A stretch of DNA of 64,000 nt from Macrostomum lignano (lineage: Eukaryota). Shown one piece after another: positions 9,776 to 60,542 of this stretch (positions are counted from its first letter, which is position 1; each line of letters begins with the position of its first letter). A model generated the notes under the pieces. It ran no database searches. It worked only from the letters and a program-made list of their open reading frames with translations, and was not told where the DNA came from. The position numbers and the translations under genes were made by a program. The DNA lies in contig NIVC01000114.1 of the NCBI GenBank assembly GCA_002269645.1, forward strand, positions 1-64,000. The letters are read 5' to 3'.

Positions 9776-38371
<28,596 letters not shown>

Positions 38372-43098: not shown

Positions 43099-46000
43099 AT
43101 GACTGTTCAGCGTCTGCAATGCGTCGCGAAAGCTGATGGTCAGAAGCTGCTGTTTCTGCTGCTTTTGCTGACTGTTGCTGCCAGACTGCCGGGGCGGACC
43201 GCCGCCTATGCTGGAATTGCCGGTTCAGGAAAATTGTCGGTGAGTGAGGACTGGGTGAGGCTGAGTGAGGGCTGGGTGAGGCTGAGTGAGGACTGGGTGA
43301 GGCTGAGTGAGGACTGGGTGAGGCTGAGTGAGGGCTGGGTGAGGCTGAGTGAGGACTGGGTGAGGCTGAGTGAGGGCTGGGTGAGGCTGAGTGAGGACTG
43401 GGTGAGGCTGAGTGAGGACTGGGTGAGGCTGAGTGAGACTGGGTGAGGCTGAGTGAGGCTGAGTGAGGACTGGGTGAGGCTGAGTGAGGACTGGGTGAGG
43501 CTGAGTGAGGCTGAGTGAGGCTGAGTGAGGCTGAGTGAGGCTGAGTGAGGCTGAGTGAGGCTGAGTGAGGCTGAGTGAGGCTGAGTGAGGCTGAGGGAGG
43601 CTGAGTGAGGCTGAGTGAGGACTGGGACTTTAATATCAGTGCAATTGCAGAAGTCATTTCAGACATATTCTTCCAATTCTTAGTCAGCATGAAAGCAATG
43701 GCAAGCAAAATTTGATAATTGCTTCTGACACGAACAAGAGCAGCAGACTGCAGCCCAGTTGCTGCTCACAGCTTATAGCTACTAATATAATTATAGGGCC
43801 TATTTCGTGGACTCTCAGCAATTGTCAAGGGCCTGTAAGCTGAAGTGTGAAGCAGGAGCTGCAATTAAGCTTCCTACGTTTAAGTGAAACTTGACCTGAA
43901 GAAGGCGCTCTCGCTAGTTAATCATTTTAACAGCCCCTATTAGTTTGTCACCCTCACGCTTTCAATTCCGTCAGCCATTCTTGCTTGTAATTTTCTTGCC
44001 TGAGAGTTTTTTTTCCAAATTTTGTTGCATCCATGAGATACCATGAGCTTCGTTGCCTTGAAAAATGCTGAATTCGTGTCTGTTGGTGCTGAATTCGTGT
44101 CTGTTGGTGTTGAATTCGTGTCTGTTGGTGCTGAATTCGTGTCTGTTGGTGCTGAATTCGTGTCTGTTGGTGCTGAATTCGTGTCTGTTGGTGTTGAATT
44201 CGTGTCTGTTGGTGCTGAATTCTTGTCTGTTGGTGCTGAATTCGTGTCTGTTGGTGTTGAATTCGTGTCTGTTGGTGCTGAATTCTTGTCTGTTGGTGCT
44301 GAATTCGTGTCTGTTGGTGCTGAATTCTTGTCTGTTGGTGCTGAATTCGTGTCTGTTGGTGCTGAATTCTTGTCTGTTGGTGCTGAATTCGTGTCTGTTG
44401 GTGTTGAATTCGTGTCTGTTGGTGCTGAATTCTTGTCTGTTGGTGCTGAATTCTTGTCTGTTGGTGCTGAATTCTTGTCTGTTGGTGCTGAATTCTTGTC
44501 TGTTGGTGCTGAATTCTTGTCTGTTGGTGCTGAATTCTTGTCTGTTGGTGCTGAATTCGTGTCTGTTGGTGTTGAATTCGTGTCTGTTGGTGCTGAATTC
44601 TTGTCTGTTGGTGCTGAATTCTTGTCTGTTGGTGCTGAATTCGTGTCTGTTGGTGCTGAATTCGTGTCTGTTGGTGCTGAATTCTTGTCTGTTGGTGCTG
44701 AATTCGTGTCTGTTGGTGCTGAATTCGTGTCTGTTGGTGCTGAATTCGTGTCTGTTGGTGCTGAATTCGTGTCTGTTGGTGCTGAATTCTTGTCTGTTGG
44801 TGCTGAATTCTTGTCTGTTGGTGCTGAATTCGTGTCTGTTGGTGCTGAATTCTTGTCTGTTGGTGCTGAATTCTTGTCTGTTGGTGCTGAATTCTTGTCT
44901 GTTGGTGCTGAATTCGTGTCTGCTGGTGCTGAATTCTTGTCTGTTGGTGCTGAATTCGTGTCTGTTGGTGCTGAATTCGTGTCTGTTGGTGCTGAATTCG
45001 TGTCTGTTGGTGCTGAATTCTTGTCTGTTGGTGCTGAATTCTTGTCTGTTGGTGCTGAATTCTTGTCTGTTGGTGCTGAATTCGTGTCTGTTGGTGCTGA
45101 ATTCTTGTCTGTTGGTGCTGAATTCGTGTCTGTTGGTGCTGAATTCGTGTCTGTTGGTGCTGAATTCGTGTCTGTTGGTGCTGAATTCGTGTCTGTTGGT
45201 GCTGAATTCTTGTCTGTTGGTGCTGAATTCTTGTCTGTTGGTGCTGAATTCGTGTCTGTTGGTGCTGAATTCGTGTCTGTTGGTGCTGAATTCGTGTCTG
45301 TTGGTGCTGAATTCGTGTCTGTTGGTGCTGAATTCTTGTCTGTTGGTGCTGAATTCTTGTCTGTTGGTGCTGAATTCTTGTCTGTTGGTGCTGAATTCTT
45401 GTCTGTTGGTGCTGAATTCGTGTCTGTTGGTGCTGAATTCGTGTCTGCTGGTGCTGAATTCGTGTCTGCTGGTGCTGAATTCGTGTCTGTTGGTGCTGAA
45501 TTCGTGTCTGTTGGTGCTGAATTCGTGTCTGCTGGTGCTGAATTCGTGTCTGTTGGTGCTGAATTCGTGTCTGTTGGTGCTGAATTCGTGTCTGTTGGTG
45601 CTGAATTCGTGTCTGCTGGTGCTGAATTCGTGTCTGTTGGTGCTGAATTCGTGTCTGTTGGTGCTGAATTCGTGTCTAAGCTGCTTGCTGGATGTCGGAC
45701 GCTGCATGGACGCTCGCGACCCATCCACCCCAGATGGAAAAATTCTGTCTACGGCCACCGACATGCAAGACTTCCAACAACAAATCCAACACCTGCACCT
45801 CAGCTCTCAATTTGACTCAACCCCCCACCCCGCAGTGTGAAGGCGAGGGAGCGGTCTGCTTCACCCAGGCCGCCTGCTGTGAGAACTACAGCTGTTTGCG
45901 AGCTAGCCAGGGTGAGTCTGACAAATATTTATACACTGACGTAACCCGCACAGGCAACGAACCTGTTCGGTTCTCAGGATCCCGTGCGGTCTCGGGATCT

Positions 46001-49000
46001 GATGCTTGCGCACTGGATCGATAAATACAATTATAACTGGCGAGATGTTGTTTCAAATTTTCCTTTTGAGGCTAAAATAAAGTGGCGCCAAATCTCATAG
46101 AAATGGCGTCAAATATCAGGTAAAATGGCGCCAAATCTTACGTAAAGTGGCGCCAAATCTCAGGTAAAGTGGAGCCAAATCTCAGATAAACTGGCGCCAA
46201 ATTTCGAATAAAGTGACGCTAAATCTCAGGTAAAGTGGCGCCAAATCTCAAGTAAAGTGGCGCCAAATCTCAAGTAAAGTGGCGCCAAATCTCAGATAAA
46301 CTGGCGCCAAATTTCGAATAAAGTGGCGCCAAATTTCGAATAAAGTGGCGCCAAATCTCAAGTAAAGTGGCGCCAAATCTCAAGTAAAGTGGCGCCAAAT
46401 CTCAAGTAAAGTGGCGCCAAATCTCGAATAAAGTGGCGCTAAATCTCAGTTAAAGTGGCGCCAAATTTCGAATAAAGTGGCGCCAAATCTCAAGTAAAGT
46501 GGCGCCAAATCTCAAGTAAAGTGGCGCCAAATCTCGAATAAAGTGGCGCTAAATCTCAGTTAAAGTGGCGCCAAATCTCAGGTAAAATGGCGCCAAATCT
46601 CAGGTAAAGTGGAGCCAAATTTAAGATTAAAGTGGCCAAATGTTTTAGTTACAGATTCTCGGTCACAGCCCCATAACCAGCACTCCTAGAGATCCAGTTA
46701 GAACTTGTTCTTCAATTATCAATTTTTCGACTTGTCAGTCCAAGTAACAATGGGCGTGGCTGTTACGGTAAGCCAAATATTTGCTGAAGGAACAGTTTGC
46801 AATGCGAATTTCCATATCTCAATATCTTATTCTCTGGACAAGGTAAAGAGAGTCATTGTGTCTTCAGTACCTGTAGAAAATTATTTGCACACAATCAAGT
46901 ACACCGGAGGTTGGACCTGAGTCTGATCTTCTTCTGTTAGCTATTAGGCTACATATATTGCTTCAGATGAGACTAAAAGTTCTCAAACGCAATCGGCATG
47001 TTGTTTATTGTCTTTCATTCCAGTAAAAATATGTGGGCTAAGTTAGGGATGCACTATTGGGAGAGAGAATAGAGTAGACACAGAGAGTAGACAGAGAGTA
47101 GACACAGAGAGTAGACACAGAGAGTAGACACAGGGAGTAGACACAGAGAGTAGACACAGAGAGTAAACACAAAGAGTAAACACAGAGGGTACACACAGAG
47201 AGTAGACACAGAGAGTAGACACAAAGGGTACACACAGAGAGTAGACACAGAGAGTAGACACAGAGAGTACACACAGAGAGTAGACACAGAGTAGACACAG
47301 AGAGTAGACACAAAGAGTAAACACAGAGGGTACACACAGAGAGTAGACACAGAGAGTAGACACAAAGGGTACACACAGAGAGTAGACACAGAGAGTAGAC
47401 ACAGAGAGTAGACACTGAAAGTAGAAACTGAGAGTAGACACAGAGAGTAGACACTGAGAATAGACACAGAGAGTAGACACAGAGAGTAGACACGGAGATT
47501 AGACACAGAGAGTAGACACAGAGAGTAAACACAGAGGGTACACACAGAGAGTAGACACAAAGAGTAAACACAGAGGGTACACACAGAGAGTAGACACAGA
47601 GTAGACACAGAGAGTAGACACAAAGAGTAAACACAGAGGGTACACACAGAGAGTAGACACAGAGAGTAGACACAGAGAGTAGACACAGGGAGTAGACACA
47701 GAGAATAGGCACAGGGAGTAGACACAGAGAGTAGACACAGAGAGTAGACACAGGGAGTAGACACAGAGAGTAGACACAGGGAGTAGACACAGGGAGTAGA
47801 CACAGAGAGTAGACACAGGGAGTAGACACAGAGAATAGGCACAGGGAGTAGACACAGGGAGTAGACACAAAGAGTAAACACAGAGGGTACACACAGAGAG
47901 TAGACACAGGGAGTAGACACAGAGAATAGGCACAGGGAGTAGACACAGGGAGTAGACACAGAGAGTAGACACAGGGAGTAGACACAGAGAATAGGCACAG
48001 GGAGTAGACACAGGGAGTAGACACAAAGAGTAAACACAGAGGGTACACACAGAGAGTAGACACAGAGAGTAGACACAGGGAGTAGACACAGAGAATAGGC
48101 ACAGGGAGTAGACACAGAGAGTAGACACAGAGAGTAGACACAGGGAGTAGACACAGAGAGTAGACACAGGGAGTAGACACAGAGAATAGGCACAGGGAGT
48201 AGACACAGGGAGTAGACACAGAGAGTAGACACAGGGAGTAGACACAGAGAGTAGACACAAAGAGTAAACACAGAGGGTACACACAGAGAGTAGACACAGG
48301 GAGTAGACACAGAGAATAGGCACAGGGAGTAGACACAGGGAGTAGACACAGAGAGTAGACACAGAGAGTAGACACAAAGAGTAAACACAGAGGGTACACA
48401 CAGAGAGTAGACACAGAGAGTAGACACAGGGAGTAGACACAGAGAATAGGCACAGGGAGTAGACACAGGGAGTAGACACAGAGAATAGGCACAGGGAGTA
48501 GACACAGGGAGTAGACACAGAGAATAGGCACAGGGAGTAGACACAGAGAGTAGACACAGAGAGTAGACACAGGGAGTAGACACAGAGAGTAGACACAGGG
48601 AGTAGACACAGGGAGTAGACACAGAGAGTAGACACAGGGAGTAGACACAGAGAATAGGCACAGGGAGTAGACACAGAGAGTAGACACAGGGAGTAGACAC
48701 AGAGAATAGGCACAGAGAGTAGACACAGAGAGTAGACACAGAGAGTAGACACAGGGAGTAGACACTGAGAGTGGACACTGAGAATAGACACTGAGAGTGG
48801 ACACTAAGAGTAGACACTGAGAGTAGACACTGAGAGTAGACACTGAGAGTAGACACTGAGAGTGGACACTAAGAGTAGACACTGAGGACACTGAGAATAG
48901 ACACTGAGAGTGGACACTAAGAGTAGACACTGAGAGTAGACACAGAGAGTAGACACAGGGAGTAGACACAGAGAGTAGACACAGGGAGTAGACACAGAGT

Positions 49001-49465
49001 AGACACAGGGAGTAGACACTAAGAGTAGACACAGAGAGTAGACACAGAGAGTAGACACAGGGAGTAGACACAGAGAATAGACACAGAGAGTAGACACTGA
49101 GAATAGACACTGAGAGTAGACACTGAGAGTGGACACTAAGAGTAGACACTGAGGACACTGAGAGTATCTGCATCCCATCTCCCTCAGCCTCCTACGGCCG
49201 CTGCGCCCCCAACCAGGCAGACATGCGGCTGGCCGAGGACGCGGCCCTGACTGACTCGGCAGACGACAGCAGCGGCGCTTTCAGCTGCTCGAGCGACTCT
49301 GACTGCCCATCCGGTCAGTGCTGCAAAGCTTCGACATCGTCGCCTGTGCCAATCGGCGGGCGGATGTCGTGCGGAAACTGCGAACGTCAGAGCCGACTTT
49401 TGGAGAGCCTGTTTGAGCAATACTACAGCGAGTTCAAGCGGAGCGGCAAAGACGGAGACAATTAA
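43099..49465 (+). CDS. Secreted cysteine-rich precursor with inhibitor-cystine-knot module and second 6-Cys module, 164 aa, 3 exons
   Basis: Exons 43099-43239 (|gtgagt, phase 0), 45836-45911 (cgcag|...|gtgagt, phase 1) and 49188-49465 (ctcag|...TAA) join in frame: MTVQRLQCVAKADGQKLLFLLLLLTVAARLPGRTAAYAGIAGSGKLS-CEGEGAVCFTQAACCENYSCLRASQ-ASYGRCAPNQADMRLAEDAALTDSADDSSGAFSCSSDSDCPSGQCCKASTSSPVPIGGRMSCGNCERQSRLLESLFEQYYSEFKRSGKDGDN. AATAAA at 49542. Confidence 0.8.
43240..43625. repeat. Minisatellite, 21/10 bp (gtgaggctgagtgaggactgg; gctgagtgag)
   Basis: Starts exactly at the intron-1 donor. Confidence 0.95.
44068..45677. repeat. 21-bp minisatellite (ctgaattc[g/t]tgtctgttggtg), ~77 copies
   Basis: Three biallelic positions; an EcoRI site in every unit; source of four ~590-aa ORFs. 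Confidence 0.97.
46080..46637. repeat. Minisatellite, ~22 bp unit (aaagtggcgccaaatctcaagt)
   Basis: About 25 tandem copies. Confidence 0.93.
47065..49165. repeat. 13-bp minisatellite (gacacagagagta and variants)
   Basis: 2.1-kb array ending ~20 nt before the exon 3 acceptor. Confidence 0.96.
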
Positions 49466-49704
49466 AAGACATTTTGGAGTTCACTAATCCCGCTGCTATG
49501 CAAAACTAAATTGCAATAACTTGCAGTTATTTTGAGAATTCAATAAAACAGTATACTTACTAAAGAAATAAACTCGACATCTTTGGAGAAATTTACAACT
49601 GGCAATAAAAACATCGTTTTTTAAAAATGTCTTGTTTACGGAATTCTAGAAAATTTTATTGGCAATAGAAATTTGAATAGTTATCGGGCAGGTTTTCGGG
49701 TTAG

Positions 49705-52217: not shown

Positions 52218-60542
<8,325 letters not shown>

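Follow-up and report, generated by a model that had tools for sequence, protein, structure and literature searches.

Prohormone-3, which is one family with the ITG-like prohormone and also carries the NCBI name 'space blanket' after the Drosophila gene spab, was first noticed through the honey-bee brain peptide ITGQGNRIF and has been classed as an ancient protostome family with members in arthropods, annelids and molluscs; the literature searched contains no mention of it in flatworms. Here we analyze a gene of the flatworm Macrostomum lignano, Mlig015013.g1, that lies within the first 64 kb of contig NIVC01000114.1 (assembly GCA_002269645.1, Mlig_3_7), a stretch of 64,000 nucleotides referred to below as the window, in which the gene coordinates are identical to those of the deposited record. 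This expressed, three-exon gene encodes a small secreted 12-cysteine protein with a secretory-type N-terminus, and our analysis indicates, with a probability of roughly 0.65, that the protein is a divergent flatworm member of the prohormone-3/ITG-like/spab family.

Wasp precursors and 120 arthropod proteins share one order of elements. A signal peptide and a WGGLFNRF... segment lead into three cysteine modules, the first with six cysteines, the second with four ('C..D.DC') and the third again with six ('C-x5-C-x6-CC'); after a short helix comes the ITG peptide, with KR on either side. The first module is spaced C-x4-C-x6-CC-x4-C-x9/10-C, and the mature N-terminus is A/WGG (the slash marks the cleavage). 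Oyster and scallop members are reported to share only 12 of the 16 cysteines, so that 16 cysteines are not universal in the family, and the ITG peptide is absent from some members (PMC8398477). Expression of the family in insect brains is broad. In Drosophila, 20-25% of the cells of the midbrain express spab (PMC5927767). Expression in the oyster is mainly in the visceral ganglia and in the lobster in brain and eyestalk; the ITG-like peptide has been imaged in ant brains, and products have been seen by mass spectrometry in insect nervous tissue and corpora cardiaca. The literature covered reports no receptor or function for any member, and to our knowledge none is known.

From end to end, the 164-residue product of the three exons matches with 100% identity the GenBank entry 'hypothetical protein BOX15_Mlig015013g1' of Macrostomum lignano, so the gene, which the initial annotation of this DNA from its letters alone had called hidden, is a real gene that had been annotated before this analysis. 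Because the Mlig_3_7 gene set derives from genome-guided RNA-seq assembly by StringTie/TACO together with trans-splice and poly(A) evidence (PMC5730564), the junctions 43239^45836 and 45911^49188 rest on transcript data. The three-exon join is not a product of chance, since it reproduces a deposited protein at the same coordinates and since five paralogue groups keep its layout and its 12 cysteines. The notion that short open reading frames among satellites happen to join in frame draws on the shortness of the exons and the repeat-rich setting and on nothing further, and it is refuted by the identical RNA-based gene model and by paralogues that retain the exon structure at 30-46% sequence identity. 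Against it stand also canonical splice sites in both GT-AG introns (donors TCG/GTGAGT and CAGG/GTGAGT, here with the slash at the exon border; pyrimidine-rich AG acceptors CCCCGCAG and CTCCCTCAG) and the polyadenylation signals that follow the stop codon.

Joined in frame, with intron phases 0 and 1, the exons total 495 nt, and every element that had been read from the sequence was recovered in the 164-residue product. The hydrophobic signal core LLFLLLLLTVAA occupies residues 17-28 and is followed by a first module, C48-x6-C55-x5-C61C62-x4-C67-x10-C78, an acidic spacer (residues 89-99), a second module, C106-x5-C112-x4-C117C118-x15-C134-x2-C137, and a C-terminal segment RLLESLFEQYYSEF (residues 142-155, with a helix at 143-152 in an AlphaFold2 (AF2) model) that leads into K156-R157 and the terminal SGKDGDN. 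Small residues occupy the -3/-1 positions ahead of a conserved F/Y in all aligned paralogues, and the -3/-1 small-residue rule places the putative signal cleavage between A36 and Y37; the mature product is predicted at 119 aa and 12.4 kDa, with an isoelectric point of 4.3. These results support the earlier description of the product as a cysteine-rich, secreted precursor that has six cysteines in each of its two modules and a KR site towards the C-terminus.

The initial annotation had proposed a search for paralogues, and a single-sequence phmmer search of 1.84 billion representative proteins revealed five matches, all from M. lignano and falling into four further groups (identity to Mlig015013: Mlig022787, 46%; Mlig030832, 39%; Mlig031025/Mlig019154, 32%; Mlig005172, 33%), bringing the total to at least five paralogue groups in the species. 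Every member has 12 cysteines, with gaps of 6,5,0,4,10-14 in module 1 and 5,4,0,14-20,2-8 in module 2. Also conserved family-wide are a proline in the c-region of the signal peptide, an aromatic residue that opens the predicted mature N-terminus ('GF.GI..GG'), 'D.DCP.GQCC' in module 2, and a C-terminal 'LF.QYYS'-type segment followed by basic residues, which in most paralogues form KR, RKR or KKR near the C-terminus. The three-exon structure is common to all five groups, intron 1 (phase 0) lying directly before the first cysteine and intron 2 (phase 1) between cysteines 5 and 6, with an exon 2 of 76 nt in four groups and of 85 nt in Mlig019154. A 925-bp uninterrupted, transcript-like contig from the Logan assembly of SRR28338164 encodes a 59%-identical orthologue of Mlig005172 that keeps 12/12 cysteines and both terminal motifs, and the family is therefore present in at least one other species.

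Some minor observations concern the copies of these genes. Each of the other paralogue groups is represented by two or three nearly identical copies (g1-g3), which is what a neopolyploid genome should show, and Mlig015013 is found on one contig only; tblastn detected no second family member in the 64-kb window. A UniRef entry from an older assembly (A0A1I8FQ11, 'Secreted protein') was set aside as a second copy or informative paralogue because it is the same gene, differing only by a frame-shifted stretch (corresponding to window positions 49265-49330) that loses two cysteines, a difference best explained by an indel error in the ML2 assembly and not by an allele.

The family had not been recognized in the initial annotation, which listed prohormone-3/ITG-like only among the families to be checked, and it is with this family that the Macrostomum proteins most likely group. 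The sequences compared were from arthropods and from the annelids Platynereis and Urechis. By hhalign, the Macrostomum profile matched Platynereis prohormone-3 with 88% probability (expectation value, E, 3e-6), Platynereis and Urechis together with 92% (E 7e-7), and the combined set of 22 arthropods and both annelids (24 sequences) with 86% (E 5e-6), and the alignment spans module 1 and continues into the next module with the order kept. In HMMER, the Macrostomum hidden Markov model matched Urechis prohormone-3 at E 0.0023 (Z = 60,000), likewise across two successive modules whose order is kept. None of 150 full column shuffles (13.3 +/- 2.9), and none of 150 shuffles in which the 12 cysteine columns were held fixed (15.7 +/- 3.5), came up to the real hhalign score of 33.0; because the fixed-cysteine shuffles never attain the real score, residues other than cysteine add to the similarity. 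The spacing of module 1, C-x6-C-x5-CC-x4-C-x10-C, is identical in Platynereis, with which the protein also has the motif 'CFT..CC..Y.C' in common, and in Urechis the first four gaps of this module match. The automatic UniRef name of one paralogue is 'ITG-like peptide'.

Gene structure provides evidence independent of these sequence scores. In four of the five groups (Mlig015013, Mlig022787, Mlig005172 and Mlig030832) a phase-1 intron falls within codon C5+6 of module 1, that is, it splits that codon after its first base, and in the fifth (Mlig019154) the loop from C5 to C6 is longer and likewise holds a phase-1 intron. In the three arthropods compared, Daphnia pulex, Apis dorsata and Tribolium madens, this C5+6 codon of the prohormone-3 gene is also interrupted by a phase-1 intron. 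Given about 90 possible positions within the module, we estimate the chance of such a coincidence at roughly 1-3%. The competing explanation is a secreted, knottin-containing family specific to Macrostomum that is not orthologous to prohormone-3, owes its likeness to generic or convergent features, and supplies gland-cell defence, antimicrobial, prey-subduing or seminal-fluid components; the shared intron position, the alignment of two consecutive modules in order to the annelid proteins, the module 1 spacing identical to that of Platynereis and the survival of the similarity under fixed-cysteine shuffling all argue against it, and for a gland origin there is no tissue evidence. We consider this explanation possible but unlikely.

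The layout of the protein is likewise consistent with membership in prohormone-3. In both groups a signal peptide precedes a mature protein whose first residue is aromatic (as in ALG/WS of Platynereis, a cleavage given by SignalP in the study that described it), a first six-cysteine C-C-CC-C-C module interrupted by the intron just described comes next, one or more 'CxxDxDC' modules follow, and a short helix with a dibasic site stands near the C-terminus. The cysteine count of 12 is that reported for oyster and scallop, and neither group has a Pfam model; Pfam scans of the protein, its paralogues and a wasp ITG-like precursor gave sub-threshold matches or none. The differences are also substantial: the 16 cysteines of arthropod and annelid members are spread over three modules (6+4+6), whereas the Macrostomum proteins have 12 in two; the latter lack WGGLFNRF-type N-terminal and ITGQGNRIF-type C-terminal peptides; identity is below what single-sequence searches detect; and there are five paralogue groups in Macrostomum as opposed to one gene.

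A number of results weigh against the assignment to prohormone-3. Compared with the 22 arthropods alone, the hhalign probability was 38%; the signal is carried by the annelid sequences. The HMMER values at Z = 60,000 were borderline for Platynereis (E 0.11) and for a profile of 120 arthropods with Platynereis (E 0.07-27), and the phmmer search of 1.84 billion proteins with the single sequence found Macrostomum relatives only and no prohormone-3 member. The bit scores of 14-20 obtained with prohormone-3 do not exceed those with knottin, WAP and Dickkopf_N models or with solved knottins (15-24 bits), and because unrelated models score equally, a large part of the signal reflects what small disulfide-rich modules generally have in common. 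The placement of module 2 is ambiguous, with P 0.004 for the middle prohormone-3 module and P 0.05 for the third: its residues resemble the annelid middle module, and its framework, C-x5-C-x4-CC-x15-C, fits the third module (C-x5-C-x4-CC-x13-C in Urechis). No ITG-type peptide was found in the Macrostomum protein, the tails downstream of the basic site in the paralogues (SGKDGDN, FG and SVNEN) being unrelated to ITGQGNRIF, and no expression data were found under the gene identifiers of Mlig015013. A likeness of the tail 'QY.S..KR' to the hymenopteran 'QYTSGEKR' was discarded, as its hhalign P was 0.4 and 62/150 shuffles scored as well.

Comparison with known folds bears on the same question. 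Among PDB sequences, the family profile matched the double-knottin 7rz3_A (remipede Xt3a; E 3.5e-4, 23.9 bits) and horseshoe-crab tachystatins (E 0.2); phmmer of the protein itself against PDB sequences found nothing. The initial annotation had identified C-C-CC-C-C as the framework of inhibitor cystine knots, and module 1 indeed has this pattern and is knottin-like, by its sequence. Pfam matches to toxin families were below cut-off (Conotoxin_I2, 14.7 bits versus 27; Toxin_12 in a paralogue, 16.8 versus 21), as were those to WAP. Relative to Xt3a, the tachystatins and the Toxin_12 spider toxins, module 1 (residues 48-78) has the same six-cysteine framework and loop lengths, but it sits inside a 119-aa two-module protein, whereas knottins are released as peptides of 30-40 aa; it has no flanking propeptide or cleavage site, it carries an internal intron, and its Pfam scores are below threshold. 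A family specific to Macrostomum would accord with the equal or better scores of module 1 against the remipede venom double-knottin and the tachystatins than against prohormone-3, as it would with the detection of the family only in Macrostomum and in sample SRR28338164, with its growth to at least five paralogue groups, as is often seen in secretory effector families, and with the inconsistent automatic UniRef names of the paralogues, which besides 'ITG-like peptide' include Ixodegrin, WAP, prokineticin and disintegrin. ITG-like proteins are themselves abundant in the venom of the spider Argiope (PMC7407881), an observation that also fits such a family.

Structure prediction was less informative for the Macrostomum protein than for its arthropod counterparts. 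The AF2 model, built from an alignment of seven sequences, has a mean predicted local distance difference test score (pLDDT) of 58, with about 70-74 in the modules, and Foldseek of this model against the PDB returned nothing significant (best E 0.6). The non-significant list was headed by knottin peptides (template modelling scores of 0.6-0.73 over about 35 residues) and also included Draxin, Dkk1 and Dkk4, the latter two at E > 1. An AF2 model of arthropod prohormone-3, with pLDDT of 80-88 over the cysteine-rich part, matched MIT1, the second cysteine-rich domain (CRD2) of Dkk1, Draxin and colipase in Foldseek at probabilities of 0.72-0.99, and knottins as well, these with its first module; the profile of the arthropod proteins matched Dkk1 CRD2 at E 0.0017-0.005. 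Prohormone-3 thus looks like a knottin-like module joined to a 10-cysteine colipase/Dkk-CRD2-like domain, and is possibly a protostome relative of Dickkopf-type ligands. If the prohormone-3 layout is so read, the Macrostomum proteins look as though they have kept the knottin-like module and, from the colipase/CRD2-like domain, a half or remnant with six cysteines.

The initial annotation had also seen in the two modules a hint of a Dickkopf N-terminal domain with its halves permuted. The part of this that stands is a resemblance of the relatives, in arthropods only, to CRD2, the C-terminal colipase-type domain, in its normal order; the permuted Dickkopf_N domain found no support, PF04706 scoring 12.8 bits against a gathering score of 25 (E 0.16; 0.026 in a paralogue) and over module 2 only. 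A reduced or permuted Dickkopf, or a ligand of prokineticin/colipase fold acting on LRP5/6-Kremen or prokineticin receptors, is a highly improbable identity for the protein. Beyond these sub-threshold Dickkopf_N matches, the presence of Dkk1, Dkk4 and Draxin in the Foldseek list and the CRD2, MIT1 and colipase matches of the arthropod profile and model speak for such a ligand, and module 2 begins, like the first half of colipase-fold domains, with C-x5-C-x4-CC and 'DxDCP.GQCC'. However, module 2 has six cysteines rather than ten, and neither an AVIT motif, nor a Dickkopf_N domain, nor a significant sequence or fold match of this kind was found in the protein; all Pfam matches fall under the gathering score; the protein has 6+6 cysteines, as opposed to two 10-cysteine domains, and no AVIT N-terminus; and the Macrostomum profile found no Dkk match among PDB sequences. 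Moreover, the Dkk-like signal of the relatives comes from a 10-cysteine domain of which the Macrostomum protein has half at best, and the alignment to prohormone-3 makes a permutation unnecessary. Of the comparisons that had been suggested with knottin, Dickkopf_N and prohormone-3, hhalign thus gave prohormone-3 as the best match (86-92%), and those by Foldseek and with Dickkopf_N gave nothing significant or above cut-off.

As a member of the prohormone-3 family, the protein would be processed in four steps. The signal peptide would be removed, probably between A36 and Y37, and six disulfides would form in two modules, the first inhibitor-cystine-knot-like, with a connectivity suggested by the cysteine framework, namely 1-4, 2-5 and 3-6 for a knot, and the second, 'CxxDxDC...CC', resembling the repeats of which the Dickkopf-CRD2/colipase-like part of prohormone-3 is composed. 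A prohormone convertase may then cut at K156-R157, giving an acidic two-module chain of about 119 aa and 12.4 kDa and a short, non-conserved C-terminal peptide. The two modules probably remain in one chain, because the paralogue alignment has no conserved dibasic site between them, and the earlier proposal of a multi-peptide precursor is accordingly not borne out. Lastly, by analogy with the arthropod, annelid and oyster relatives, neurons or neurosecretory cells would release the product, which would serve as an extracellular ligand, since relatives are expressed in nervous tissue (Drosophila midbrain, oyster visceral ganglia, lobster brain and eyestalk, insect nervous tissue). Of the roles put forward initially, namely toxin, defence or signalling, signalling is plausible, and a toxin role is without direct support.

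If they belong to prohormone-3, the two-module proteins would add Platyhelminthes to the range of the family. Prohormone-3 function could then be studied with relative ease in M. lignano, because stable transgenesis and RNA interference work in this species, and the reduced members would show which parts, namely the ITG peptide and four of the cysteines, are dispensable. A more speculative scenario, to which we assign little likelihood, is that Macrostomum stripped a prohormone-3-type protein to two modules and expanded it to five groups as gland-secreted defence or prey-subduing peptides; if true, this would parallel the recruitment of ITG-like proteins into the venom of orb-weaver spiders, and the proteins would form the first family of knottin-type effectors to be described from a free-living flatworm. 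The main outcome is corrective, in that the locus holds an annotated gene of a probable known kind and no new toxin class. Its features, and those of its surroundings, are given in Table 1.

Table 1. Coordinates of the cysteine-protein gene and of other features in the window.
Feature	Position	Strand	Description
Exon 1	43099-43239	+	141 nt, residues 1-47; start codon, signal peptide, conserved N-terminal segment YAGIAGSGKLS
Signal peptide	43099-43206	+	Predicted cleavage between A36 and Y37
Intron 1	43240-45835	+	2,596 bp, phase 0; ends directly before first cysteine codon
Intron 1 minisatellite	43241-43626		10/21-bp unit
Intron 1 minisatellite	44066-45677		21-bp unit, 77 copies
Exon 2	45836-45911	+	76 nt, residues 48-72 and base 1 of codon 73; C48, C55, C61, C62, C67 (module 1 cysteines 1-5)
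Intron 2	45912-49187	+	3,276 bp, phase 1; interrupts codon 73, which is C5+6 of module 1
Intron 2 array	46078-46636		22/110-bp unit
Intron 2 array	47071-49153		13-bp unit, 161 copies
Exon 3	49188-49465	+	278 nt including stop TAA, residues 73-164; includes acidic spacer, predicted helix 143-152, tail SGKDGDN
C78	49202-49204	+	In exon 3
C106	49286-49288	+	In exon 3
C137	49379-49381	+	In exon 3
K156-R157	49436-49441	+	In exon 3
Polyadenylation-like signals	49542, 49567, 49604 (span 49542-49609)	+	Three AATAAA, 77-139 nt past stop codon
PDE8-like neighbour	~33099-38371	+	E.g. exons 35981-36478 and 36867-37292; 778 aa
Open reading frame	59480-60184	-	234 aa, non-repetitive; may be an exon of a neighbouring or unannotated gene

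The four intronic tandem arrays sum to 4,640 bp, in agreement with the 4.6 kb of satellites among which the exons had originally been placed. Minisatellites fill the whole 64-kb window: Tandem Repeats Finder lists 64 rows with a score of >=300 and units of 2-286 bp, rows that overlap so that one array may appear under several periods, and nearly all long open reading frames in the six-frame list of the window are translated repeats. Since minisatellites crowd the window and about 15% of the M. lignano genome consists of tandem repeats (PMC5730564), the satellite-filled introns are ordinary for this genome.

The first minisatellite of intron 1 (window 43240-43630) begins right at the donor base of exon 1, and the repeat unit includes the donor core. 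The 390 bp at the start of the intron contain 37 GTGAG motifs, GTGAGT occurring only at the first, and the frame of exon 1 stays open for about 70 more codons into the adjoining minisatellite. The array thus offers potential cryptic 5' splice sites repeated in tandem, and it may have grown out of splice-site sequence.

The upstream neighbour, whose end lies about 4.7 kb upstream of the cysteine-protein gene, is a PDE8-like cyclic-nucleotide phosphodiesterase with PAS domains and PDEase_I. The minus-strand open reading frame near the far end of the window is rich in lysine and serine and has no Pfam match.

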